A stretch of DNA of 64,000 nt from Thalia democratica. Lineage: Eukaryota. Below, in pieces: positions 7,773 through 45,880 of the stretch. The position numbers and the translations under genes were made by a program. The number at the start of each line of letters is the position of its first letter. Position 1 is the first letter of the stretch. The notes beneath the pieces are model-generated. The model did not search any database. It saw only the letters and a list, made by a program, of their open reading frames with translations, and had not been told where the DNA came from. Where the stretch lies: contig OZ241827.1 in assembly GCA_965202585.1 (NCBI GenBank), forward strand, positions 46,500,001 to 46,564,000, written 5' to 3'.

Positions 7773-8177
7773 TTAAAACTTGTTAAACTTTAAAAGCGAC
7801 TTTTTTATATGTCTACAAGACGATACAAACTCGCTTCTTTTGTTCAAACATCTTTTGTCTTTCAGTGCATATACAACGGCTGATGCTTCTTTGAGACACA
7901 GCCTACATATCGGGCTATTGCCGTCGGCTATAGGCTGTGCTCTTTTTATAACTTCCCAGGATATTTCGTAGTCAATGCCGCTGCGCTTTAAGCCACAAAC
8001 ATACTTCGAAAGTTCAGTGTCATTTTCATATATGCCGCCTTTAAAAGATTTTTTATGATTGGCATACCTGAATCTAAACTGAGTCGAGCACAAGCCGACA
8101 TAGAACCTCGTCTCAACGCCAGAGTTAACTGTGGCCTTGTAGACGATGTTCTCTGAACGGCAATTACCCCCTTTCAA
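7773..8177 (-). CDS. PLE GIY-YIG endonuclease, left (mirror) arm
   Basis: Protein identical to 10115..10519. Confidence 0.85.
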   Translation of the reverse strand: MKGGNCRSENIVYKATVNSGVETRFYVGLCSTQFRFRYANHKKSFKGGIYENDTELSKYVCGLKRSGIDYEISWEVIKRAQPIADGNSPICRLCLKEASAVVYALKDKRCLNKRSEFVSSCRHIKKSLLKFNKF

Positions 8178-8190
8178 ATTATATTTACAG

Positions 8191-9114
8191 CTACCAGCGC
8201 AGCCGCATTGACTCCGAATTCCTGAGTTTTGATTTAAAATTTTTTTTTTGGTTGTGTGCCTTAATGATATTCTCTAAATTTGCCGTACACGAATAACTTA
8301 TTCGCATATTATGTTTGTTGAAGATTTTAGTTAGCGGATTTTGTTTATTGAAGTGTTTCTTGACTAGATTTATAAATTTTCTTCCAATATTAGTTTTTAC
8401 AGAATTGCTAAAAGGAGGGTTATACCAGATTACATTTCTTTTTCTTTTGTGTTTTTGATTATTAGGTTGTTGCTCAGGTTTTTCGAATTTAAGTTTGTTG
8501 TCGTATACGCATTTTTTCATTATTTTTTCATATTCATCTTTAGTCTTTAAAAAATTTTCTTCTTTGCTTGATCGTTTATTTAGGCGTTGATTTATTATGT
8601 TAGGAATGTGTTTTATAATGTTTTTAGGGTGGCTTGATTGTTTGTTGACATACATAATTTTAGCGTTTTGTTTCCTGTAAGGCATAAAAGAGATATCATT
8701 TAAGTTGAGCTTCACATCTAGGAAGTCAGTTATCACTAGTGGAGATTCCACAGTGACTCTCAACCCCATAGATTTGAAGAAGGCATGGGTTTGTTTTTTT
8801 AGCTTCTCAACTTTAAAGCCAGAAGAGTTGGGCAATACAGCTAGACCATCGTCTCTGTATAGCCCAACTCTATTTAAACCAAAGATATCTTTTAACCCGT
8901 CTAACAAGAAAAGTCCAACAAGTTCGCATAGTTCTGCGCCCATGTAAGACCCCTGTGCTACGTCAAAAAGTGAGTTGGTGGTATTTACTCCCTTCCTACG
9001 CCACAGAGCTCCTTGTTCGCAGAGTACCGATTTGCAGGCATTTCTTATCAGACTTAAGTCCTCGGCAGGTACGCTAATGTAATTATTAGCAAAGTTCAGT
9101 GATTTAATCACCAA
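8191..9114 (-). CDS. PLE reverse transcriptase, left (mirror) arm
   Basis: Identical to the right-arm protein except Q>H (NIIKHIPN) and G>V (KKCVYDN). Confidence 0.85.
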   Translation of the reverse strand: MVIKSLNFANNYISVPAEDLSLIRNACKSVLCEQGALWRRKGVNTTNSLFDVAQGSYMGAELCELVGLFLLDGLKDIFGLNRVGLYRDDGLAVLPNSSGFKVEKLKKQTHAFFKSMGLRVTVESPLVITDFLDVKLNLNDISFMPYRKQNAKIMYVNKQSSHPKNIIKHIPNIINQRLNKRSSKEENFLKTKDEYEKIMKKCVYDNKLKFEKPEQQPNNQKHKRKRNVIWYNPPFSNSVKTNIGRKFINLVKKHFNKQNPLTKIFNKHNMRISYSCTANLENIIKAHNQKKNFKSKLRNSESMRLRW

Positions 9115-9144
9115 CTCTTCACTAATAGCTTTTTTAAGTTCGAT

Positions 9145-10101
9145 GTGGTCGATTATTATCCTTCTATTAGTGAAGAGTTGGTGATTAAATCACTGAACTT
9201 TGCTAATAATTACATTAGCGTACCTGCCGAGGACTTAAGTCTGATAAGAAATGCCTGCAAATCGGTACTCTGCGAACAAGGAGCTCTGTGGCGTAGGAAG
9301 GGAGTAAATACCACCAACTCACTTTTTGACGTAGCACAGGGGTCTTACATGGGCGCAGAACTATGCGAACTTGTTGGACTTTTCTTGTTAGACGGGTTAA
9401 AAGATATCTTTGGTTTAAATAGAGTTGGGCTATACAGAGACGATGGTCTAGCTGTATTGCCCAACTCTTCTGGCTTTAAAGTTGAGAAGCTAAAAAAACA
9501 AACCCATGCCTTCTTCAAATCTATGGGGTTGAGAGTCACTGTGGAATCTCCACTAGTGATAACTGACTTCCTAGATGTGAAGCTCAACTTAAATGATATC
9601 TCTTTTATGCCTTACAGGAAACAAAACGCTAAAATTATGTATGTCAACAAACAATCAAGCCACCCTAAAAACATTATAAAACAAATTCCTAACATAATAA
9701 ATCAACGCCTAAATAAACGATCAAGCAAAGAAGAAAATTTTTTAAAGACTAAAGATGAATATGAAAAAATAATGAAAAAATGCGGATACGACAACAAACT
9801 TAAATTCGAAAAACCTGAGCAACAACCTAATAATCAAAAACACAAAAGAAAAAGAAATGTAATCTGGTATAACCCTCCTTTTAGCAATTCTGTAAAAACT
9901 AATATTGGAAGAAAATTTATAAATCTAGTCAAGAAACACTTCAATAAACAAAATCCGCTAACTAAAATCTTCAACAAACATAATATGCGAATAAGTTATT
10001 CGTGTACGGCAAATTTAGAGAATATCATTAAGGCACACAACCAAAAAAAAAATTTTAAATCAAAACTCAGGAATTCGGAGTCAATGCGGCTGCGCTGGTA
10101 G
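9145..10101 (+). CDS. PLE reverse transcriptase, 5'-truncated at motif A; frameshifted at A10 run (10043-10052)
   Basis: ORF track 318 aa with YYPSI, QGSYMG, YRDD and FLDV motifs; the frame extends upstream to TNSFFKFD (9121-9144). Confidence 0.85.
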   Translation: MVDYYPSISEELVIKSLNFANNYISVPAEDLSLIRNACKSVLCEQGALWRRKGVNTTNSLFDVAQGSYMGAELCELVGLFLLDGLKDIFGLNRVGLYRDDGLAVLPNSSGFKVEKLKKQTHAFFKSMGLRVTVESPLVITDFLDVKLNLNDISFMPYRKQNAKIMYVNKQSSHPKNIIKQIPNIINQRLNKRSSKEENFLKTKDEYEKIMKKCGYDNKLKFEKPEQQPNNQKHKRKRNVIWYNPPFSNSVKTNIGRKFINLVKKHFNKQNPLTKIFNKHNMRISYSCTANLENIIKAHNQKKNFKSKLRNSESMRLRW

Positions 10102-10114
10102 CTGTAAATATAAT

Positions 10115-10519
10115 TTGAAAGGGGGTAATTGCCGTTCAGAGAACATCGTCTACAAGGCCACAGTTAACTCTGGCGTTGAGACGAGGTTCTATGTCGGCTT
10201 GTGCTCGACTCAGTTTAGATTCAGGTATGCCAATCATAAAAAATCTTTTAAAGGCGGCATATATGAAAATGACACTGAACTTTCGAAGTATGTTTGTGGC
10301 TTAAAGCGCAGCGGCATTGACTACGAAATATCCTGGGAAGTTATAAAAAGAGCACAGCCTATAGCCGACGGCAATAGCCCGATATGTAGGCTGTGTCTCA
10401 AAGAAGCATCAGCCGTTGTATATGCACTGAAAGACAAAAGATGTTTGAACAAAAGAAGCGAGTTTGTATCGTCTTGTAGACATATAAAAAAGTCGCTTTT
10501 AAAGTTTAACAAGTTTTAA
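10115..10519 (+). CDS. PLE GIY-YIG endonuclease domain (C-terminal part of the same, frameshifted ORF)
   Basis: Removing one A from the A10 run joins RT to HNQKKILNQNSGIRSQCGCAGSCKYNLKGGNCRSENIVYKA..., a Cys-rich linker followed by GIY-YIG, ending CRHIKKSLLKFNKF*. Confidence 0.85.
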   Translation: MKGGNCRSENIVYKATVNSGVETRFYVGLCSTQFRFRYANHKKSFKGGIYENDTELSKYVCGLKRSGIDYEISWEVIKRAQPIADGNSPICRLCLKEASAVVYALKDKRCLNKRSEFVSSCRHIKKSLLKFNKF

Positions 10520-15476: not shown

Positions 15477-18400
15477 CTAAAAAGCTTGAGCAAAGATTAC
15501 CTCTCCATTTTGAATTCCAAGTGACACAGGACTATCACCAGTCTAAACGAAATTGGAGCCGAAGCGGAAACATAAGCAATTCTTTCCAATATTTTCCTTC
15601 TTGCAGTACTTGGTTATCAACCTAAATTTTTTTTTGTTTAGAAAAATGCTTTCTGTAACGAGTTGTACATTACACATGAAAAATTTTACTTACCAGTTAG
15701 ACATTTATACTGTTTAAATTTAGACAATTTGCTAAGAAACTAAGGCAGTGGGCCTGTTCACGGTTACAGTAGCTGTTAAATATCATTAAAATGAAACCTT
15801 CTTAGAATGTTCAAAGTAATTGGTCATTTAAACTGTTACTAATTTATCAAACTAACTTTTCCATTTTTTGTCCCCTGTTGATTGAAAACTTTCTTTTTCT
15901 CCCTTCCTGGTTAATGATTTTCACAGAAACTCCTGAAGGCTCGATTTCTTGAGATGAATCTTTTAAACAACATTTAGCTTCATCATCTTTTACGACCATA
16001 GCTTTTGCATTGCTTCTTTCAACGGATTGATTTTCATCTCCTTTAAAACAAGAATATTCTGGTATGTTAAGCGTACCAAGCAGTGGTTTTTCATTCAATT
16101 TCATTCTCGATTGTAAGCATGTTCTGGTGGTCATGAGAATTTTATTTGTCACTAGAATCTAAACGCATAAGAAAATTTCTCTGATCTGAACAATTTAAAC
16201 CTTTCGTAGATACCGATTCAACAGAGTTAATATTTGGTTTTATTTTGTGTTCTTTTGCAGTTAGCTGCTTCGTAGGCCTAAATATAAGACCTTATATTTA
16301 TTATGCAGAAGTTTATTTAAGAACAGTGCATATTTACTTAATAAAAAAACGAGTTAAATAATCACTACTGTTTGGATACTATAATTATTTGTCTTTTCTT
16401 TTAAGTAACACACTGTTGAGTAAGTGATTTAAAAATTACCATTGGTTGCAGTTAATTCTATCTTGTGTTTCATTCCTAAATTCATTGGAATGTCGAAATC
16501 AAAAATATTTTGACCGAAATAATTAAAATAAACTTGAATCCTAAATAAATTTTTCATCATGCAGTATTTTTCGAACAACCTAAAAAAATGATACCATAAT
16601 AAGTTACAGATCACACACTGATAGTATATCTAAGTTTATAGACTGGGGTAAAGTTACCCCTGGTGATAAATTTCCTTGTTATAGGGGTAGGTTATCTTAA
16701 TTGCAAGTTATGTAAACTAACCTAAATTAATTATACGTTTTTATTTAACTGTATTTTTTTTTTAGTTAAGTGAACTCTTTAAATGTTACAACTAACTATA
16801 TTTTTTCTGGCTTTAAGCTCATAAAATATATATTCCACTAAATTAAACACTACGTAATTTACAGTCTTCACATAAGTCACACACTTAAATTTAAAAAGGG
16901 GTATATCTGGTAATAAACTGTCAAAGAAAGGTATAACTTGAAGTAATGGTTAACAAACGCTAATTTAATCATTAATATTATAACCTATGTGAAAAAATAG
17001 TTACTTTTTAAGTTTCTGGTTTGATCTTATGTTAAATTTTATTTTGTCACCACGCTCATCATCGATACGTAAAACAACTCTGTTCAAAGTGTCCATAACA
17101 GGTTTTGAATCAACTTTACTGTACACAGCTTGTTTCGAAGCCACATCTGTGTGGAATAATGCTTTTACGCCAAAAATGCTGATATTTTAATAAAGAATGC
17201 TACAACTAGTAAGTTAATTTATTTCAAAGAAAACATTAATATACTTCTCAAATACATCGATTTTATCTCCTTCCTTCATTCCAATAGACTTAGGCGTGTC
17301 TGTATCCAAAACTTCACGACCTTGAAATTGAAAATTCGTAAAATCTCTATTCAAATTTTTAATTTGGCAGTAATTCGTGAACAACCTGCAATGAAAAGTT
17401 AAAGATTGAAATATAAGTCGTTCTTGTATTTAACTTTGAACAAATTATATTTGATAACTTATCAAAATGTCTGTAAAGAACCTTTGTGATGCTGGTACTT
17501 ATTTTGTACTTCAAGTTTTCATTTTCACTTGCATTTTTGTTTAATAATTTTAGTTCTGAAGAATTGACATCTGTAACGTTTGACTGTGTTTTGTTCACTA
17601 AATTAAAAGCGTTATCCTTGCAGTTATTAACAACGTGTTCGTCATTTGAATTAAAATCATCTAAACTGACGCTTGCAACCTCGGCTTTTTCAAAACCGTG
17701 GTTTATAGGAGCATTATTTAAAATATTTTGCTTGCTGCAATCATCTGCTATTTTATTTTTTAAATTAGTAATCTGACTGCTTAGTTGCTCTGGACTTGTT
17801 TGAACTACGTTATTATCATTACTTTGCTTGGTTTGGTCGCTTTTGTCAGCACAAAGTTAATTACTCAATTTGTCCATATCTACCCTGTAAATTGTGACTT
17901 GTGAAATAAATTAGTTCCATTAAACAAAAAATTAAATATAGTTCAATTAAAAAAAAAACAATTAAAGTATTTAACAAAATGGTCAACAATACCATATTTT
18001 ATTAAAAAATAGCTTAGTTAGTTTGGACCTCTAATAAAACAGCTAGATTATGATTATTTATTTAAATTTTAAGCTATAAGTTTCTTACTTATGTTCAACA
18101 GAAAAATTTAACTACCTGTCAAAACAATCAATATCGTCTCCTTCTTTGAGACCAATAGACTCTGGTGTGTCTGATTCCGTTACTTCCAGACCATCATACA
18201 TGAAACAAACCATTTCTTTTTTAAGTCCTTTAGTTATGCAAAAATCAGCAATCAATCTAAATTAGAATGCTTTTTAAATAATTACATTTATCACAATTTA
18301 AATTAAGTTTTAAGTGAAAACTTTTGAATGTGTTTCACTAAAACTATTTATCTTTTACTGATTAATTTTTATTATTGTATAATATGTAAGAAATTTAAAA

Positions 18401-20941
18401 GTAAGCAAGTTTTAGTTAGCTATCGTATTTACTTAACAATGGTTTCTTAAATAAATTGTGTTCTACTTACTTTTGTAATTTGTCATTTTTATTAATACTG
18501 AAATGCAGTGTTCTACTATTTGTCAAAGCGTTGCTACTGATGATATTATCAGCATCATCTACCGAAGTTTTATCTTTACTACAACATGTTAAATCTGCAA
18601 AGCATTCATCATCTTAAACAGATTCATTTAAACTATTTTCAAAGCTAGAGTTTTTATCTTCATCAACAGCTTCAGGTGTTTTATTTTAATTGACTAGACG
18701 GTTAGAGCAAAGAGACTGGTCTTTCACATAAGAACTGTAGAGGCATTTTCGATCAGTGAAGGTAACTCTGTTATTATTCAATATAATTTACTTAAGTATA
18801 AAAAAGGTAGTATATGCTAAACAATGGATTTACAAATGTATTAACAACTGGGAGTTTCTATGGTAAAATAAACGTTTCTACACAACTTATATTTATCTTA
18901 CAAAAATGTTAAGATTTGAAATTGAATTCAATCTTATAAATAACCTGTATCTTAGTTCAATCACATCTCCGTTTTTTAATCTTAAAGATTTAGGTGTATC
19001 AGTGTCTCTAATGGGACGACCGCCGTAGCTAAAACAGAATTGTTCTTTTTCTAGATTCTTTTTTTCGGCAGTATTGAATCAACAAACTGAAAAATTTAAT
19101 GTACTTAGAATTATGGTTATTATGTAATGCAAGGTAAGTACTAACATAGTTAAGTTATCAGAATCAAATAAACGGAGTAACTAGTTTTTAAGACTTTCTT
19201 ATTATACCTTTCTTATAAATCTAAACAAACCTTTCCATACTATGGTTTACGTTTGTTGTCATTTGAGTTCTAATATTTTTTTTTCTGCCAATTCTCTTGA
19301 AGTAGTAGTAGATTCTTGATTATTTATATTAACAGATTTATTGTTTTTCAAATTGCCAGAATTTTCACTCTCGTTGCAAGTTGTTACCTCAACACTTTCA
19401 GGTTTTTTTAAACCGCCTTTATTTGAACAAACTTCATGTTCCGTACCAAACAACGTATTTTTATCTAAAATGTTCTCTTTGTCAGTTACATTCATTTCTC
19501 GCTGTGAAGTTGTTTGATCTTTTATCATTTTATCACCCTAATCAACTTGGTCGACAGCTTGAATAGAGTGTTGACCAACTTTTTGGCTCTCAACAAAATC
19601 CCTAAAGACGTTACTTTTACTAGTCTTTTACCATATAAAGAAAATATAAAGCAGTGTTGAACCTGATTTCTATTATAACAGAACTGTCAAATTAACTACT
19701 GCTAACGAAATACATCATATTAAAACTAGGTTACCTGTCAAAACAGTCAATATTGTCTCCTTCTTCTAGTCCAATAGACTTAGCTGTGTCTGTTTCAAAC
19801 ACCTCTTGACCATTATACAAAAAACATACGAGATCTCTTTCAAGTCCACGAGCATTACAAAACTCAGTCATAATTCTGAAAATAAAAACATATAGTAAAT
19901 TGAAATTACATTAAGACTAAAATTATTAAACAGTTGATAAGCTTTAATATAGGTTCACTGCTACTTATCCTACTTAAAAACATATTACTGTAATCAAATT
20001 GAAATAGTAATTAAACATATTTTATAAGCTCCAGGGTTCATAACATTTTACAATTTTATTTATTTATTTCATATGTTACCTTTTTAAGTTATTGTTTTTA
20101 TTAATTTTGTAGTACAGTGTTTTGCTGTTTTTCAAAGTTTTGCATTCATTTACACTACTAAAATCATCTTCAATAGTTGCATCTGTACTATTATTTGTTG
20201 AAGAGTCGACACAACTATCATTAGCTGAATCATGTTGGTTTGAACTGATTTCTAAGTTTGATTTTAAGCCTAATTTTTTTACCAGAAGTGCCTGTATATA
20301 CAGTTACATTAGCTATAGATTTTTTACACAAAGATTGCAAGCTGCTTTCATCCAAACTTGAATTTGTTTCTCTTCTATCAATATTTTCAGAAGACCTATA
20401 AAAATACAATAATTTTTCAGTAATAAACATTCGTTGATTAATGGCAAACTACATCTCTAAAACATTAGCTTCTTTAGATGATTTAAGTATTTTTATTAGT
20501 AAATAAAATACTCAAAAAACTTTTTTTACTTTTTATAAACACAAACTATATCTCCATCCTTAAAACCAATTGAAATTGGTGTGTCAGTGTCAATAACAGC
20601 CTTTCCTTTGTAAATTAATCCAACTTTGTTTTTTCCAGCATTAAATTTCTCAGAGTACTTGGCCATTATTCTAAAAAACAGAATTAATGTAAGACTCATT
20701 AAAATATTACCTACAAAACTATTTCAGTTAGTCATTTTAATGATATTTAAGTTCAACTATTTTTAAACAAGTGTTATTGCCTTTAAATAATTAAATAAAT
20801 AAACTTCATCATTAGTTGGTTGGGATGCATTTGAAACTTGCACTTGTTGCCCGTTGCATCTTGAACCTTCAGAACTACATTTTGAATAACTTTTTTACAA
20901 GGATTGAAACGGTTTAGCTCAATAAGTTTATCCTTAAACAT
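15477..20941 (-). pseudogene. Unprocessed pseudogene (or broken allele) of a protein with 7 tandem SUMO-like domains (SLDs)
   Basis: Exons with GT-AG boundaries: 20941-20805, 20670-20530, 20395-20080, 19875-19735, 19601-19231, 19086-18945, 18767-18471, 18256-18116, 17884-17459, 17385-17245, 17178-17005, 16579-16440, 16277-16201, 16158-15857, 15621-15477. The SLD C-half exons are 141, 141, 142, 141, 141, 140 and 145 (terminal) nt, e.g. IMTEFCNARGLERDLVCFLYNGQEVFETDTAKSIGLEEGDNIDCFDR and LIADFCITKGLKKEMVCFMYDGLEVTESDTPESIGLKEGDDIDCFDR, versus human SUMO2 [45 protein letters not shown]. In-frame stops at 19540, 18688, 18616, 17859, 16144 and 15545; frameshifts in exons 3, 5, 6, 12 and 14. Confidence 0.85.
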
Positions 20942-28800: not shown

Positions 28801-28994
28801 ATCATTTCTAACTCACGATCATTTCTTGCCCGATCACTTCTAACCCGATCTCTGCTTACCCGATCGTTTCTAACCCGATCATATCTAACCCGATCATTTC
28901 TAACCCAATCACTTCTAAACTAGTCACTTCTAACCCGATCACTTCTAACCCGCTCATTTCTAACCCGATCACTTCTAACTCGATCATTTTTAAC
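28801..28994 (+). repeat. 15-bp tandem repeat array (TAACCCGATCA[T/C]TTC)n, orphan transposon terminus
   Basis: About 13 degenerate units preceded by GGTTTAC(T/C)ATCATTTCTAAC, the same start as at 50448. Confidence 0.8.
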
Positions 28995-29334: not shown

Positions 29335-30706
29335 TAGTTACGTGTAATTTCAGGGGACAATAATTCAGTGGCAATTGCTAATATTGTATTGCATTTCATC
29401 ATGTTAACAGTACAGAATAAAAATAAAGTATTTTTTATTAAAATATTTATTGGTGACATTGTATTTATCTCAGAAAGCAAAGAAATTGCCAATGACATCA
29501 TCAAAGTTTAAAAGACTTATTTGAAAAACATAATCTTAAAAAAACACCTAATATGATGTCCAAAGATAATAAAATAATTACTTTTTTAGACGTAGAACAT
29601 TTACTTAATAATGATAGTAAAATCAAATATTTTAAAAGAAAATGTTTTATAAAGGAGACTGCAAAAAACACAACTTTTTTAATTTGTGTACTTTATACTT
29701 TAAAGATGACAATCAAAGTTCTCAACTTAAATAAGAGGAGAATGATCAATTATAAATTTGAAGTTTTATTAACAATACAATGTTTTACTCGCTTGAAACT
29801 AGTCAAACATTGCATTGTTAATAAAACTTAAAATTTATAATTGAACTTTTCTAAATGATACATCATAACATACACAAAGTGTGTTTAAAGGAATTATAAC
29901 AAGAGAAATCAAACACCTCAAAAGATTGAATGAAAGCGAAAATTATTTCAAGGCTAGTTTATTGAAATATGAAAAGAAATGCATAAGATCCAATTTTAAT
30001 TCCAAAATAGTCAAAATCCATTTTAAAAAAGTTAGTGAATTTTACTTAAGTGAGAGTTAAATAAACTAAAAATTCAAAATTGTAAGAATATATACTGGTC
30101 ATCTCAATATAAAAATTTGTCAAAATTCACTAAAGAAGAAAAGAAACTGTTTCCACTTGCAAACCAAGAAGTATAGGTCATTTGCTTAACACATTTAGTT
30201 GTATAGCCGAAAAGGGAAGCAACTTACCTATTATAAGATCAAAATTCAAAAACTGTGCATTATGCGGAAAATACAGCAATTATAAATACATGACAGATGA
30301 CAGTAGTAAAACCGGTTGAAAACAGAACAATAGACATAAAACCAAAATTAAACTATATAAGTTATGGAATATATTCTGCTCAGTGTTCAATATGCAAAAA
30401 AATATATATGTAGGTCAGACTAAAAATAGTTTTAATCTAAGATGGAATGCACATTAAAAAAAACTGGAAAAAATCCAAGGAAGTTTTAACTTGGTTGGTA
30501 AAGGAGACGAATCTGCCTTATTTAAACACTACTTTGAGAATCATCATACTGATATTGAAAATATAGGATTAGACAGTGCCTACAAGATAATGTTTTTAGA
30601 ACAACCTGAATTTAAAAGTTTAGACTACAAAGAAAGTGTATGGATAAAAAGACTAAATGCAAAAATTAACTTAAATAAAACAATTTCTAAAGATTTAATA
30701 TTTTAG
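29335..30706 (+). mobile_element. Degenerate Penelope-like element (RT + GIY-YIG), Naiad-like
   Basis: Relic motifs: VISGDNNSVAIANIVLHFI (29344-), FIGD in place of the xxDD motif (29446-), ITFLDVEH...FIKETA, CALCG, GIYSAQCSICKK..YVGQTKNSF..RWNAH, and DESALFKHY...LDYKESVWIKRLNAKIN (ORF 30491..30706). Multiple stops and frameshifts. The clade label comes from remembered motif style, not an alignment. Confidence 0.7.
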
Positions 30707-31285
30707 AGCTTGGTATTTATTACAATTTAAAAAAAAAGAGCATTTTTGCACATTGTGTTTTAGCTTGTTTACTTGTATGCGTTTATGAGTTATTAGTTGG
30801 TAAAATCTTAGTTTTAAAATTTATATGATAGTTAATTGTGTTTTTGTTATGGAAATGTTTTATAAATTTATATAGCCTAAAAGTGTAGTTGTTAAGTTTA
30901 ATTTTGTTTACTTTATAAATGTGTTACTAATAATTGTGTGTATACAATTTCAGCCGTTTATCACTTATAAACGAAAGTACTAGTGAAACAAAAGCGTGTA
31001 TTTGTTCATTTTTCAAAGACAGTAGAAGCAATATTGTACTTTTTACCATTATTTTGTTTTTACTTATTTATTATACTTCACTGTCTGAACAAAGGAGTTC
31101 TTATAATCATAAACACTGTAAATAAAAAACGGTTTTAATTTTAAGCACTTTATAATATTAATATCTTAAAGATTTAGTTTTACTTCAGTTCATTTAAAGT
31201 AAGTACTGCTATACAAACCAGGGACAATTTACAAATCTTATACTACCTTACTATAGTACTGTACTAAACTATAGTACTGCTATAC

Positions 31286-34200
31286 CAGGGGTCGGCAAAC
31301 TGCGGCCCGCGGGCCAATGCGGCCCTTCAAGGGTAAATCTGCGGCCCACGAGCACATTATTTTTTTGAATGGAATGCGGCCCGTGAAAGAAAATTTTGCG
31401 GCCCGCGAGCATGTAAATGTGGCCCTCTGAGCAACAATATATTTTAAGAAAAATTTCTTTGATTAATCTAGTTTTAAATCTCTCTATAATATTTTAAAAC
31501 AAATAAAATAATTTACTGATTTAGCTTAAAAATGTGAAAAAGACAGGTTAGCATTCCACCAGGTTTTTTTCTTAATTTCATAATAACTTTCTTATTACAA
31601 CAGCAAACTATTTTCTGAAAAAATGATTGCAAAAAGTGCTTTGAATTACTAAGATAATTATATAATACCTATTTAGTAAATAAACTAAATGCAAATGTTT
31701 TCCATTTTGTACAAAAGTAATGCACAGTAATTAACTAAAATGTCATTTCTTTACCGTTTATTTTTTTTTACACGTTTTTTATACCTAAGTTTCTGTTACA
31801 GATGTTTTATTACTTAATGTTATGTTTTAGTGCGCACAAAAATATTTAAAACAACATAATACTAAAAAAGTAAGGTTAATATTATTTTGGTTTTGACACC
31901 TTTAATTTTTTAGAAGTTTTCTTTGCATCTTAAATTAATTCCTATGCACACCAATGAACAAAGATGCTCAGATTTTAAACCACTTTTTATTTTATACTTA
32001 ACGAGTAAAAATTTAGTTTATGCACAATTTTTTAACATTATTGTTTCTACATGTAATATCTAAGTGTGTAAAGACACATTTAAAACAATATATATGACAT
32101 AAATTAAAAAAGTTTTTGTTAGGTATTCTTTTTATTTTTCAAACAATGTTTTTTTGGAAAAATAAGCTAATTTTTACGCGTTGCATACTAATATAAACAG
32201 TTGCTGTTTTTTAAAACAACCTATTTAATACAAATTAGATTGAGAAATGGTTATTTATTAAGCTTGTACATTTTTAATCAAAATTGTTCAAATTCGATCA
32301 AATGAACAAACAAAAATTGCCACACACTCAGACTATGACTTTTTGAAGACTTCAAATATCAGGCCAATTTAGTCATTTTACAGTTTTTGGCTTGAATTGC
32401 TTTTTGTATGCTAAAATATTAGGCTAGTTTTGGTCACTCGGACTGACTTTTTTGCTTTAAAAAGTGATAAAAAAAATTATTATGTAGGTTTTGTTTAATG
32501 CACAGTATTGGTTTAAATTAAAATATATTTCAAATTTTAAGTCTTGCAGCTGATATAATCTGACTTATTATTTATATTAGTTGTATACATTCAAGTGTGA
32601 TCAACTAGTGTTGCCAAAAAGTCCCGGGAAAGCTTGGAATTTGACATTTTTCGCTAAAGAAATCTGAAAACCCTTGAAATTGAGAATTATCGCAAAAACT
32701 TAAAATTTTAAGCAATTTTTACATGTTAAGTAATGAAGTTTTGATTTGACACAAAAATTCTAGCATATAAATAATTCTTCTTAAAATACACAATTACAGT
32801 AGCTTTACAGTACCTTTTAAATTTTTCTATATTATTTAATACATCTTTTTACCTTTAGCTTAATTTTATACTAAAAATAGAAGTAAAAAGTCGTAGTTCT
32901 AAAAACTTTATATTGGTGCATTGCACCTTTGCTTCAAAATGTCTTTACCTATTGTCGTGCTTTGTATTGGAACTAAACCTAGAAATTCTTCTAAAGTGTC
33001 AAAATTAGTAAAACCACTTGTAATAAAAATTCGAAAATAAGCAATATCTGTTGTATCAGTTCTCTCATGCTAACAGATTGATTTAAGTCCTAATTTGAAT
33101 CATGCAGCTTAATAATCTTCAGACATTTCCTTGACACGACTTCTTGTTGATATTGAAGAAATAAACAAAAATATCTTATTAGTGCCAACACAAATTATTT
33201 AAATAAGTTTTCAACTCTAAACGGTATCTTTTTTGAGCAATTACTTTTGCTACTTTATAACTTTCCTCAACAGTTTTTTTCTGATCAGTCTGTAGTTACT
33301 GAAAATAATCATGTGCGTTGTTGAAACTAACTTATACGATTTTTTTTTTTCGTTTCTTGCAATAACTCCAAACTAACGTATTATAGTTCTTATAGCTCGT
33401 CTTATAATTTACATTTCCTCTTTTTAAATGCAATATTTTTAATGCAGATAAAAAATTGCTTTAAAATAGGTTTTTCTAATTCATTGATAGCTTAATAAAT
33501 TTTTATACATTTGTTAAAAATGTTTAAAAACTGATTTGTTCATTCAAGCTAGCTGAATTGTAATTGTTTTTTTAGTTACAAACTGACTGTTAACAAACTT
33601 CAATATTATTTTATTTTGTAAACTTTGTTTTAAACAGGGTTGCCAAACAAACAGCTTAGTTTTAAAAAATTTAAAGTCAGACAAGGTTAAGCTGTTTTAG
33701 AAATTGTTATAAAACTCAGGTGTATCTGAAACTTTTATTTTTAACACTTTGAATAATTCTTCAAATTCTCAGAATAGTTTTTATGACTGTATTGTAGTTA
33801 ACTAGTTGTAGTTTTTTTGTAAATTTACATATTGTGCTTTTTATAAAAATGATACTTTAGTAATGTATTTAAGCTTGATTAATAAAAAGCTTTTAGCTAT
33901 TTTAACTTTTAGTAAACTTTTAATATAATTCAGACAATATTTCTTTTAAAGTGGCAACCGTGTAAAAGTTTAATAAGGTATTTTATTAAAGTATTCGAGT
34001 ATAAATTATGTTAAAATATTTGATTTAGCTTATTTACTGTATAAATAGGTATTAATTTTATTTTATTAACTAATTACTGAATTTTCTAAAGAGTGGTGCA
34101 AACTATTTAAGACGCAAAACTATTTTCAAAATTTGACTTTTTTTTAAATATGAAAAGGTGGTTCATAATATAAAAAATGTATAAAAGTGACCCATACATG

Positions 34201-44719: not shown

Positions 44720-45880
44720 ACACGACTAAATCAAAAGTTTTATAGAGTTTATTTCTTTACAATTGTTTCATGCTTTCGCAGTAATCATAAGTTAACAAGT
44801 GACAATAGACATTTGATATATATAATATTAGCATAGTAATTAGTTAATTAACTAGTCAATTAAGTATTTTTAAGTAGAATTAAAGATTACAGAGTGGGTT
44901 TAGCAGTTAAATCTGAAATAAAAAGCTAGCAACTTATTATCATCAACGTATAAAACAAAGGACAACAAAAGATAAAGTACAATAAACTAGAATATGAAAC
45001 AAATTACACAACTACGTATAAAAGCATAGTTAGGGAAATTCAAAAATTAATTTTAATTATAGAGTTTGACATATAAGACTTTAAATAATATTTTGTAAAA
45101 TGTCTGCGTTTTCTTACCAGTTTAGATATCAGATTTAGTGGATTTTTCTGTCTGCAAATAAAATTTCAAGTCTTTCTAGATTGAGGAAAGTGCATATTTT
45201 ACCAGAATTATTTTGGTTTGTGTAGTGAAGAATTTCCCATCTTATAAGTTTTTCCCAATTTATACTTTCATCTTTGATTTTGTTGATAAATCTGCTAAAC
45301 CTTGTAATTTTTTTCTTTTATTTATTCCTAAAGGATTGCATGTGTTCATAGAATCTTTGATCAAACTGTTTACCTGTGGACCCGATATATATAGTTTCCT
45401 TATTTTTATATTCTATAGTAACTATATAAATCACTCCTTTGGCATTTTCCATTAAGTTGACAGTTAATTTTTGATCTGCGATTGCAGAATTGTTAGTCAT
45501 CGTCCGTTGTTTTATATGAATTTTGAAGAACTTGTTGATTATGTTTTGATATTTCTCTTTCCAGATTAGGCATACAAGAATATGAGATTTTAATAGTTTT
45601 TTTATTGATTATAGGTCCATAGAACCCTGATTTTGGGAAGTGCTTAATTTTCAACTTAAGGAACTCCCTTTCTATGTTTGTTTTTATAGAATCGATGAAG
45701 GGCGGGTTAAAATATAATACATTTTTTTTCTTTTATCTGCTACAGCGGTGTCCATGACATACGATAATGGGGTTTTAAAACCTTTTTTTAGGCATTTTCA
45801 TAGGGAATTTTAAATTTGTCAAAAACCTCTTGAGTTTTGGATAAAGTTGATGGTCGTTATATGTGTATATACATAAAATA
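44720..45880 (-). mobile_element. Older PLE of the same broad clade as the palindromic element (thumb/linker + GIY-YIG + 3' UTR)
   Basis: Relic translation RPSTLSKTQEVFDKFKIPYENA, LYFNPPFIDSIKTNIEREF, IKISYSCMPNLEREISKHNQQ, GVIYIVTIEY...YIGSTGKQFDQRFYEH, is homologous to VIWYNPPFSNSVKTNIGRKF / ISYSCTANLENIIKAHNQ. It ends at a (TA)-rich tail near 44705-44722 and may extend to about 46400. Confidence 0.75.
44755..44791 (-). ncRNA. Decayed hammerhead ribozyme relic
   Basis: CUU [I] aUGAUuA c-UGC-gaaa-GCA-u [II] GAAA CAAUUG U A | AAG [I']. Two core substitutions, palindromic ACAAUUGU stem III, and the same position relative to the PLE tail as at 10776. Confidence 0.5.

Follow-up and report, generated by a model that had tools for sequence, protein, structure and literature searches.

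A pseudogene for seven predicted SUMO-like domains from what is very probably a multi-copy family in a marine plankton animal

SUMO chains are read by proteins that carry several SUMO-interaction motifs (SIMs), and linear SUMO fusions are a laboratory tool for imitating such chains. To our knowledge, the proteins with SUMO-like domains (SLDs) that have been described in the literature have two such domains only (the RENi proteins and the plant diSUMO-like proteins). The RENi proteins (Rad60 / Esc2 / NIP45-NFATC2IP) have exactly two C-terminal SLDs behind a polar N-terminal region (PMC549199), and Esc2 and NFATC2IP bind both Ubc9 and SMC5/6 through their SLDs (PMC7849368, PMC11065178).

Within the window (the whole 64-kb stretch of DNA analysed here), positions 15477-20941 of the minus strand hold 14 exons that encode seven SUMO-fold domains. 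This locus is itself a dead copy only. We propose that it is, very probably, a decayed copy from a lineage-specific multi-copy family whose intact members have about six or seven diverged, non-conjugatable SUMO-like domains. The host of the family is a very AT-rich marine plankton animal, and members of the family are expressed. The fold is the one seen in SUMO1/2/3, but here there is no C-terminal di-Gly, each chain has seven domains with long linkers, and the genes are multi-copy and lineage-specific. As in the RENi proteins, non-conjugatable domains of the PF11976 family are an integral part of a larger protein. However, the seven-SLD architecture of the window does not match the two C-terminal SLDs of RENi: there are six or seven domains in this family, they are spread over the whole protein, and they are closer to SUMO proper. 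No orthology to RENi was seen. Nor does the locus resemble a polyubiquitin-type precursor, with abutting units that each end in G-G, as linkers are present and di-Gly is absent.

The sequence-only reading of this DNA knew of no described protein with seven diverged SLDs. We also found no paper that describes multi-SLD proteins, this family included, but public databases already contain entries, unnamed or automatically named, for dinoflagellate, fungal, and Caenorhabditis proteins with 3-11 tandem SUMO-like domains. The dinoflagellates Effrenium voratum (CAJ1429324.1) and Biecheleria have 8-11 tandem Rad60-SLD repeats, Caenorhabditis tropicalis A0A1I7TLR5 has 3-4 SLDs, and two proteins from metagenome eukaryotes (P0171 and P0034) likewise have tandem Rad60-SLD domains in one polypeptide. 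The dinoflagellate and nematode proteins also lack di-Gly, as read from their sequences. None is closely related in sequence to the present family, and their high rank among the matches comes from summed domain scores; the dinoflagellate repeats are nearly identical to each other, whereas the seven domains of the window are 24-57% identical. Fungi have head-to-tail poly-SUMO (6 repeats in Rhizophlyctis rosea KAJ3045567.1 and 4 in Cadophora KAH7381855.1), and maize diSUMO-like DSUL also has several SUMO units per open reading frame. Most of the fungal units end in Q-x-G-G and have short spacers, as in a polyubiquitin precursor, in contrast to the long linkers and missing di-Gly of the present family. 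Thus, the multi-SLD architecture is not unique, and it may have been invented recurrently across lineages.

Exon structure and fold of the domains

Each of the seven domains is encoded by a module of two exons (Table 1), which is the architecture that the sequence-only reading had proposed and which the track of open reading frames misses. In the minus-strand model, all exons have AG acceptors and all 13 of the internal donors are GT. In each domain, a phase-2 intron cuts the codon of the K, R, or S that opens the K-L/I-M helix, after the second base. This common position had been noticed before, and so had the C-half lengths, which are 141 nt or a 1-nt variant except for the last. The linker-bearing exons are 174-421 nt. 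All seven C-halves match each other by tblastn (E from 1e-3 to 1e-17), and no extra copy of a C-half was found by tblastn in the 64-kb window. The first SLD begins 19 residues past the initiator Met; that ATG is preceded, about 15 nt upstream, by an AG acceptor, and the start and its short leader are conserved in three relatives (L012, L014, and L002). The alignment of the window to L002, which is a metatranscriptome contig, breaks exactly at the first predicted junction, and at the other predicted junctions that L002 spans, the alignment breaks within a few bases of the prediction. From the second exon on, both boundaries of each exon are in phase 2, so duplication, loss, or skipping of a module leaves the frame intact. 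This fits with the differing numbers of modules between copies.

Table 1. Exons of the seven-domain locus, in order of transcription, with the lesions in the window copy (DxN and DxC are the N- and C-halves of domain x)
Exon	Coordinates	Strand	Length and features
1 (D1N)	20805..20941	-	Conserved ATG 20941-20939 and N-half of domain 1; 3' end holds two bases of the Lys codon that the intron divides; alignment to L002 stops exactly at 20805
2 (D1C)	20530..20670	-	141 nt, open; Pfam ubiquitin/Rad60-SLD positions 24-70; L002 alignment resumes at exactly 20670
3 (linker 2 + D2N)	20080..20395	-	316 nt (333-336 nt in intact copies); 17-nt deletion after 20274, frameshift
4 (D2C)	19735..19875	-	141 nt, open; Pfam Rad60-SLD 26.4 bits, above gathering score; matches P0018/P0170 at 87% amino acid identity
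5 (linker 3 + D3N)	19231..19601	-	371 nt; in-frame TAG 19540-19538 (Leu in L014); 1-nt deletion in A-run 19284-19276
6 (D3C)	18945..19086	-	142 nt (141 nt in intact copies); 1-nt insertion near 19058; open part matches Pfam ubiquitin, 29.2 bits
7 (linker 4 + D4N)	18471..18767	-	297 nt; in-frame TAA 18688-18686 (GAA in L010) and TAA 18616-18614 (TTA in L010)
8 (D4C)	18116..18256	-	141 nt, open; exon with the most public-run contigs (20 at site 18135 in run X1)
9 (linker 5 + D5N)	17482..17884	-	403 nt; in-frame TAA 17859-17857 (CAA in L010); 5-nt deletion just before the donor
10 (D5C)	17245..17385	-	141 nt, open; Pfam Rad60-SLD 26.5 bits
11 (short linker + D6N)	17005..17178	-	174 nt, open
12 (D6C)	16440..16579	-	140 nt, one base below the 141-nt norm, so that the exon-13 frame is lost; most diverged domain, no Pfam hit alone; tblastn to D5C, E 2e-7
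13 (linker 7 + D7N)	15857..16277	-	421 nt; TAA 16144-16142, possible TGA 16093-16091, and 1-nt insertion near 16086, called against L002 (alignment 68% identical, positions approximate)
14 (D7C)	15477..15621	-	145 nt including the stop; in-frame TAG 15545-15543 (CAG in L002); conserved terminal TAG 15479-15477

Taken alone, five of the window's C-halves match the Pfam models for Rad60-SLD or ubiquitin (E from 1e-4 to 8e-7, profile positions of about 26-70), and three of these exceed the gathering score. Against Rad60-SLD (PF11976), the C-halves score 20.7-26.5 bits, with two above the threshold of 23.8. The D6C and D7C pieces alone have no Pfam hit, but tblastn ties both of them to other C-halves; the N-half exons alone, which span about 25 profile positions, also have no hit. 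When the two halves are joined, as in a spliced 273-amino-acid reading frame from L002 (P0180), the domain that is homologous to D7 of the window matches positions 1-68 of the 72 in Rad60-SLD (73.8 bits, E 1e-20). The top sequence matches in the PDB are SUMO1/2/3. An AlphaFold2 model of P0180, which is an environmental homolog rather than the broken copy in the window, has pLDDT of 92-97 for both domains (97 for the D7-homologous one), with low confidence for the first strand of D5. Foldseek matches this model to SUMO1/2 with TM scores of 0.90-0.96, rmsd of 0.5-1.0 Å, and 28-32% identity. The SUMO-type signature F.F.G..I...DTP..LGM..GD.ID is also found in these domains. So, the checks by Pfam and by structure prediction that the sequence-only reading had suggested both give SUMO-like domains.

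No di-Gly follows any of the window's seven domains, as read directly and as had been noted before, nor does one follow the domains of the intact homologs. The last domain ends with AQAF-stop in the window and with EKF-stop or EKY-stop in L002/P0180. A C-terminal di-Gly that SENP processing exposes marks a conjugatable SUMO, and without it the domains are expected to be neither processed nor conjugated. From their sequences, we conclude that the seven domains are SUMO-like and predicted to be non-conjugatable. The linkers had been described as rich in D, E, S, and N. They are indeed Ser/Asn-rich, but in the intact copies they are not mainly acidic: they are near neutral (D+E 14%, K+R 13%) and Lys-rich. 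These polar linkers of 60-130 residues are probably disordered, and by eye they contain no clear SIM-like motifs.

Intact relatives and expression

Tara Oceans metagenome contigs contain collinear copies in which all of the exons are open, although this intactness is pieced together from environmental contigs of 1-3 kb, which could represent more than one paralogue or species; neither an intact gene nor a cDNA was obtained at full length. In one contig (L015), five exons in a row (336/141/363/141/273 nt) are open, with GT-AG splice sites. Another (L010) has no interruption from D3N through D5C, a span with 6 lesions in the window, and two more (L012 and L013) have D1 and D2 open. There are seven distinct open frames for the linker-2 exon, of 120-143 amino acids, and the chance that one 112-codon frame would be open at such a base composition is about 6e-5. 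Splice sites are conserved across the copies, as are the phases and lengths of the exons. (A 668-amino-acid protein in the P0028 cluster, P0173, was considered as a full-length relative, but it is a mis-clustered bacterial E1 dehydrogenase.)

Two metatranscriptome contigs (L002 and L009) are spliced at the predicted junctions. L002 itself has two stops and two frameshifts, it lacks D3, D4, and D6, and its 5' end is fused to a truncated kinase reading frame; a search for such kinase exons found none in either the window or L012. L002 may be a chimeric assembly or the transcript of another pseudogene. In public reads for this genome, each exon has several to roughly twenty related contigs. Three public runs (X1-X3) have 632-776 related contigs per run, at 88-99% identity, with peaks of depth on the C-half exons.

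Decay of the window copy and constraint on the family

Relative to L010, L014, L015, and L002, the window copy has 6-7 in-frame stops and 6 frameshifts, so the sequence-only reading, which had treated the locus as a gene whose frame needed repair, underestimated the damage. All 13 introns are kept. The exons are 87% identical to those of L010 and have 4 gap events, against 80% and 17 for the introns. The locus is a non-processed pseudogene with retained introns and relaxed constraint on its SUMO domains. It is very unlikely that this is instead a working gene and that the stops and frameshifts are errors of assembly or sequencing, for instance at homopolymers. Two of the frameshifts do coincide with or adjoin runs of A (A7 near 20280 and A9 at 19284-19276), and some public-run contigs have the restoring base in the A9 run. 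Also, the site of the exon-9 stop (first base 17859) is CAA in every public-run contig that covers it, so assembly errors, or variants confined to the assembled individual, could account for a few of the lesions. However, most contigs, and most of the contig depth, share the window's state of the A9 run; the 6-7 stops are of the substitution type; the 17-nt and 5-nt deletions are not homopolymer slips; and long transposon reading frames in the same window are intact. Finally, dN/dS for the C-halves is 0.88 between the window and its closest intact relative (L010), as compared to 0.24 in aggregate among the environmental copies. An alternative genetic code with TAA and TAG as Gln, which was raised by the first-seen stops all being TAA or TAG, was rejected: the transposon reading frames of the window are open under the standard code, the intact homologs have sense codons at the stop sites, and exon 13 has a possible TGA as well.

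If the window copy is a pseudogene, might the whole family be non-functional repeats, with a SUMO-derived module amplified in the manner of a macrosatellite or by a mobile element and with merely incidental transcription? The family is multi-copy, a block of linker 2 + D2N, D2C, and linker 3 + D3N is reused in tandem (L003-L007), there are partial copies and mosaics (L011, the upstream remnant in L014, and L017), the L002 transcript is damaged, and the DNA of the window is rich in transposons. Still, we consider this quite unlikely. Among the environmental copies, dN/dS is 0.67 for the linkers, while it ranges from 0.05 to 0.47 for the SUMO-domain exons, and four non-overlapping comparisons of C-halves give an omega of 0.27 (P = 2e-7, Fisher's exact test); these are simple Nei-Gojobori counts over exons of 42-131 codons, and pairs are not independent. 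By these counts, the SUMO-domain exons of the family are under purifying selection. Furthermore, many long exons are open at 25-28% GC, the exon structure is conserved as described above, no transposon protein or terminal repeat was found adjoining the locus, and the seven domains can be aligned only at the protein level, which implies that the architecture is old. The family is expressed, multi-copy, and subject to fast turnover, and its SUMO domains are selectively maintained. The sequence-only reading had called for a search for intact copies and for dN/dS, and had allowed that neither an intact copy nor purifying selection might exist anywhere; open copies exist and their SUMO-domain exons are constrained.

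Possible functions of the intact proteins

The SUMO fold and the aromatic-x-aliphatic motif of β2, which is equivalent to the SIM-binding site of SUMO and by eye is kept in 6 of the 7 domains, suggest that the intact proteins might be hard-wired imitations of a linear SUMO chain. As such, they would serve as a multivalent platform or decoy for SIM-containing proteins, with SIM+RING ligases among the candidates. This mechanism is plausible but tentative: the β2 motif is common to SUMO-like domains generally and so does not discriminate. If the proteins are mimics, then a natural, non-cleavable SUMO chain of 6-7 domains on flexible linkers would be the evolved counterpart of the laboratory tool.

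A more speculative extension, which we consider doubtful, is that these would be natural linear poly-SUMO mimics in an animal that coevolve with tandem clusters of SIM+RING (STUbL-like) ligases. The family would then be decoys that soak up the readers of SUMO chains, or else dedicated substrates or scaffolds of the ligases. In this view, the fast turnover of copies would stem from genetic conflict, for example over the silencing of transposons, which is SUMO-dependent in other animals. The family and the ligases would be a testable pairing for the buffering or hijacking of poly-SUMO signalling.

The intact members could instead be cofactors like Rad60/Esc2/NIP45 that hold the backside of Ubc9 and steer SUMOylation, rather than mimics that are read by SIMs. 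Both groups of proteins have SUMO-like domains that cannot be conjugated and that fall within one Pfam family, and, as mentioned above, the SLDs of Esc2 and NFATC2IP bind Ubc9 and SMC5/6. This seems unlikely to us, as there are seven domains and not two, as SUMO itself is the best match by both sequence and structure, and as chains of Rad60 or NIP45 are absent among the matches listed. Also, the position of SUMO1 Glu67, which we take to lie on the surface that contacts the Ubc9 backside, is N, D, Q, G, or K in these domains (by-eye alignment).

Exon architecture and SUMO-like identity

The poly-SLD locus lies on the minus strand and comprises 14 exons, all with an AG acceptor and with GT at the 13 internal donors. 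Two types of exon alternate: exons of variable length that encode a linker and the N-terminal half of a SUMO-like domain (SLD), and fixed-length exons that encode the C-terminal half. All introns are in phase 2 (after the second codon base), and the in-domain intron site is, in every domain, the codon of the K, R, or S that opens the first helix. The sequence-only reading had claimed seven split domains, these lengths for the C-half exons, and a phase-2 intron at one helix position, and we found the same numbers. It had also claimed that di-glycine is absent: Gly-Gly follows 0/7 domains in the window copy and, as read from sequence, none in homologues such as those on the environmental contigs L010 and L015. 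The linkers are polar (S 16%, N 12%, K 12%, D+E 14%).

The seven C-halves match each other by tblastn (E of 1e-3 to 1e-17), and no eighth copy was found in the 64-kb window. The seven-domain layout is old and not the result of recent local duplication, because the domains are only 24-57% identical as proteins, alignment at the nucleotide level is left only among the C-halves of domains 2, 4, and 5 (D2C, D4C, and D5C) and linkers 2 and 4 (66-77%), and the introns within the locus do not align to each other at all.

Five of the C-half exons, taken alone, match Pfam Rad60-SLD or ubiquitin at profile positions ~26-70, and three of these five pass a gathering threshold in this way (that of Rad60-SLD for D2C and D5C, that of ubiquitin for D3C). 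The N-half exons alone are too short to score against Pfam. For whole domains we used naturally spliced environmental sequences, not the window's own exons. The spliced ORF of the P0180 type (273 aa, D5-linker-D7) matches Rad60-SLD with 73.8 bits (E 1e-20), and its last domain spans positions 1-68 of 72. Its best solved relatives by sequence, among the matches listed, are SUMO1/2/3, and no Rad60 or NIP45 chain is among the PDB matches listed. In the AlphaFold2 model of this ORF, the last domain has a pLDDT of ~97 and D5 one of 92-97, the ~70 residues of linker between them are disordered, and Foldseek aligns the model to SUMO1/2 with a TM of 0.90-0.96 and an rmsd of 0.5-1.0 Å. So, the claim that the domains are SUMO-like is borne out by both the HMM scores and the fold of a spliced relative.

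Also, AlphaFold2 places a β-strand in the linker after D5, at residues 103-111 of P0180 (TTISIESLFL, conserved in a fragment on contig L014). D5 of P0180 has no confident model for its own first strand, and the extra strand comes just after the domain. It might complete the D5 sheet or occupy the SIM groove.

Decay of the window copy and its open relatives

Lesions in the window copy, 12-13 in all, were called by aligning each exon to intact homologues.

Features of the poly-SLD locus and its surroundings (window coordinates)
Feature	Position	Strand	Detail
poly-SLD locus	20941-15477	minus	
Linker + N-half exons		minus	137, 316, 371, 297, 403, 174, 421 nt
C-half exons		minus	141, 141, 142, 141, 141, 140, 145 nt (last including stop)
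Exon 3 lesion		minus	17-nt deletion
Exon 5 lesions	19540	minus	TAG; also 1-nt deletion in A-run
Exon 6 lesion		minus	1-nt insertion
Exon 7 lesions	18688, 18616	minus	TAA at both
Exon 9 lesions	17859	minus	TAA; also 5-nt deletion at donor
Exon 12 lesion		minus	1 base under 141 nt
Exon 13 lesions	16144, 16093	minus	TAA at 16144, perhaps TGA at 16093; also 1-nt insertion
Exon 14 lesion	15545	minus	TAG
PARP frame	2-832	minus	277-aa open frame off left end; PARP catalytic domain (PF00644, E 1e-10)
Penelope-type remains	7776-10516		head-to-head ORFs, 332 aa + 166 aa
Tandem repeat	28801-28994		15-nt unit (ATCACTTCTAACCCG), ~13 copies
Penelope-type element remains / GIY-YIG fragments	30320-31459		
GIY-YIG fragment	45321-45608		Pfam PF01541

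At the stop sites, the homologues have a sense codon that is one substitution away (GAA, TTA, CAA, or CAG); the TGA at 16093 is less certain and is two substitutions away from its reference codon, GGG. The copy in the window is dead. An alternative genetic code does not account for the stops, as the ORFs of transposons in this window follow the standard code and the relatives lack these stops. It is unlikely that the lesions are mostly errors of assembly: stops that arise by substitution and deletions of 5 and 17 nt are not homopolymer slips, and at the A-run of exon 5 the window's state is shared by most of the contig depth from public sequencing runs. However, all of the public-run contigs read CAA at 17859, so independent confirmation does not extend to every lesion.

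When we searched a profile of the C-half exons against 1.8 billion proteins, the nearest relatives came from Tara Oceans metagenomes as ORFs of one exon, each of them nearest to one particular window domain (63-87% amino acid identity to D1C through D6C). The domains thus had their order and identity before these copies split. On contig L015, five exons in a row (336/141/363/141/273 nt) are open, with GT-AG introns and lengths divisible by three. L010 runs collinear to the window over D3N-D5C, with 87% identity in exons versus 80% in introns and with 4 gap events in exons versus 17 in introns; it is open throughout, whereas the window has six lesions there. Both L012 and L013 have D1-D2 open, and L014 is open except for one 1-nt insertion. 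Seven different open ORFs of the linker-2 exon, 120-143 aa long, also came from a word search (with stops at 8.3% of codons, as in the window, the chance that a 112-codon frame stays open is ~6e-5). The poly-SLD family is alive outside this copy.

Exons of 42-131 codons, compared in overlapping pairs, give only crude dN/dS values (Nei-Gojobori); with that proviso, values among the environmental copies were 0.05-0.47 for C-half exons (aggregate 0.24) and 0.44-0.97 for linker + N-half exons (aggregate 0.67). Four non-overlapping C-half comparisons gave 0.27 (Fisher p = 2e-7). Between the window and L010, dN/dS was 0.88 for C-half exons and 0.60 for all exons, and this relaxation is as expected of a pseudogene. 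The check for intact copies and purifying selection that came with the sequence-only reading thus turned up open copies and a low aggregate for the C-halves. Because the domains are SUMO-like and the open copies are under purifying selection, both of the findings that could have overturned that reading failed to appear.

Transcripts, rearranged copies, and surroundings

Two JGI metatranscriptome contigs from different samples, L002 and L009, contain spliced copies. The alignment of L002 (2731 nt) to the window follows the exons one by one, at 67-91% identity; it breaks exactly at 20805|20670 and, elsewhere, no more than a few bases from a predicted junction. L009 has the same D5-linker-D7 ORF (P0180), 99% identical to that of L002. 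L002 includes D1, D2, a second D2-type C-half, D5, and D7, without D3, D4, or D6, and it is damaged by two stops and two frameshifts. A Ser/Thr kinase domain that is cut short (STK24-like by eye; L002:52-651 matches Pkinase with E 3e-51 at positions 1-177 of 263) occupies the 650 nt at its 5' end and runs into a stop 8 nt ahead of the conserved ATG. The poly-SLD transcript (L002:652-2607) is joined to it at an acceptor ~15 nt upstream of that ATG. Neither the window nor the 2 kb upstream in L012 has a kinase exon. The join could reflect read-through, an operon-like arrangement, or chimeric assembly. For L002 as a whole, chimeric assembly and read-through are likewise candidates, as is another damaged paralogue.

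To assess copy number, we placed the contigs of four public runs, three of them organismal, on the locus. In each of the organismal runs, 632-776 contigs match it at 88-99% identity, with up to 20 distinct contigs at single sites. Summed depth at D2C, D4C, and the exon-3 bin is 7-10x that of the D6-linker 7 part, and the depth peaks coincide with C-half exons. Among the environmental contigs, L003-L007 re-use the [linker 2 + D2N, D2C, linker 3 + D3N] block in tandem, L011 has a mosaic exon of D6C/D5C type, L017 has a copy that is truncated after exon 3 and adjoins a NUDIX ORF, and on L014 a stray piece of linker 7 (L014:15-173) lies 1.1 kb upstream of the first exon of another copy. With phase 2 at both ends of all internal exons, the frame survives rearrangements of this kind. 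In each of runs X1-X3, a single low-depth contig connects 20802 to 20666 through six other letters; some copy is rearranged or duplicated around intron 1.

The window has a GC content of 25% and is rich in transposon debris, including a Penelope-type palindrome at ~7.4-10.8 kb. The PARP frame shares the strand of the poly-SLD locus and lies 14.6 kb downstream of it; we note this as neighbourhood alone, with no link implied.

Possible function and relation to known proteins

The most economical mechanism is the one put forward by the sequence-only reading: non-conjugatable SUMO-like domains, strung on polar linkers, would form a linear multivalent mimic of a SUMO chain, which would recruit or titrate SIM-bearing proteins. 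Where SUMO2 has F32 and I34 in β2, the residues (by eye) are aromatic in 6/7 domains and aliphatic in 7/7, respectively. F32 and I34 are part of the QFI patch that is mutated to abolish SIM binding, and the pattern is compatible with SIM binding by the poly-SLD domains. It does not discriminate, because it is general to the whole Pfam family. The main functional rival to a chain mimic is a RENi-like role as a Ubc9 cofactor.

In the literature that we searched, integral SLDs are described only in pairs, in the RENi family (PMC549199) and in recent work on NIP45/NFATC2IP and Esc2; plant diSUMO-like proteins are described as well, and we found no description of four or more tandem non-cleavable SLDs. 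Databases nevertheless contain proteins with 3-11 tandem SUMO-like domains from unrelated eukaryote lineages, in entries that are unnamed or automatically named. Dinoflagellate proteins (P0002, P0006, P0007, P0162) have 8-11 near-identical SLDs without di-Gly. Among fungi (P0001, P0161), a chytrid protein strings six SUMO units head to tail and a Leotiomycete protein four, and most of the units end in GG. Caenorhabditis tropicalis (P0023) has "Rad60-SLD domain-containing" proteins with 3-4 SLDs, and several proteins of metagenomic eukaryotes also have 3-4. None of these is closely related to the poly-SLD family. Therefore, the family is not a new category; the multi-SLD architecture looks recurrent and undescribed.
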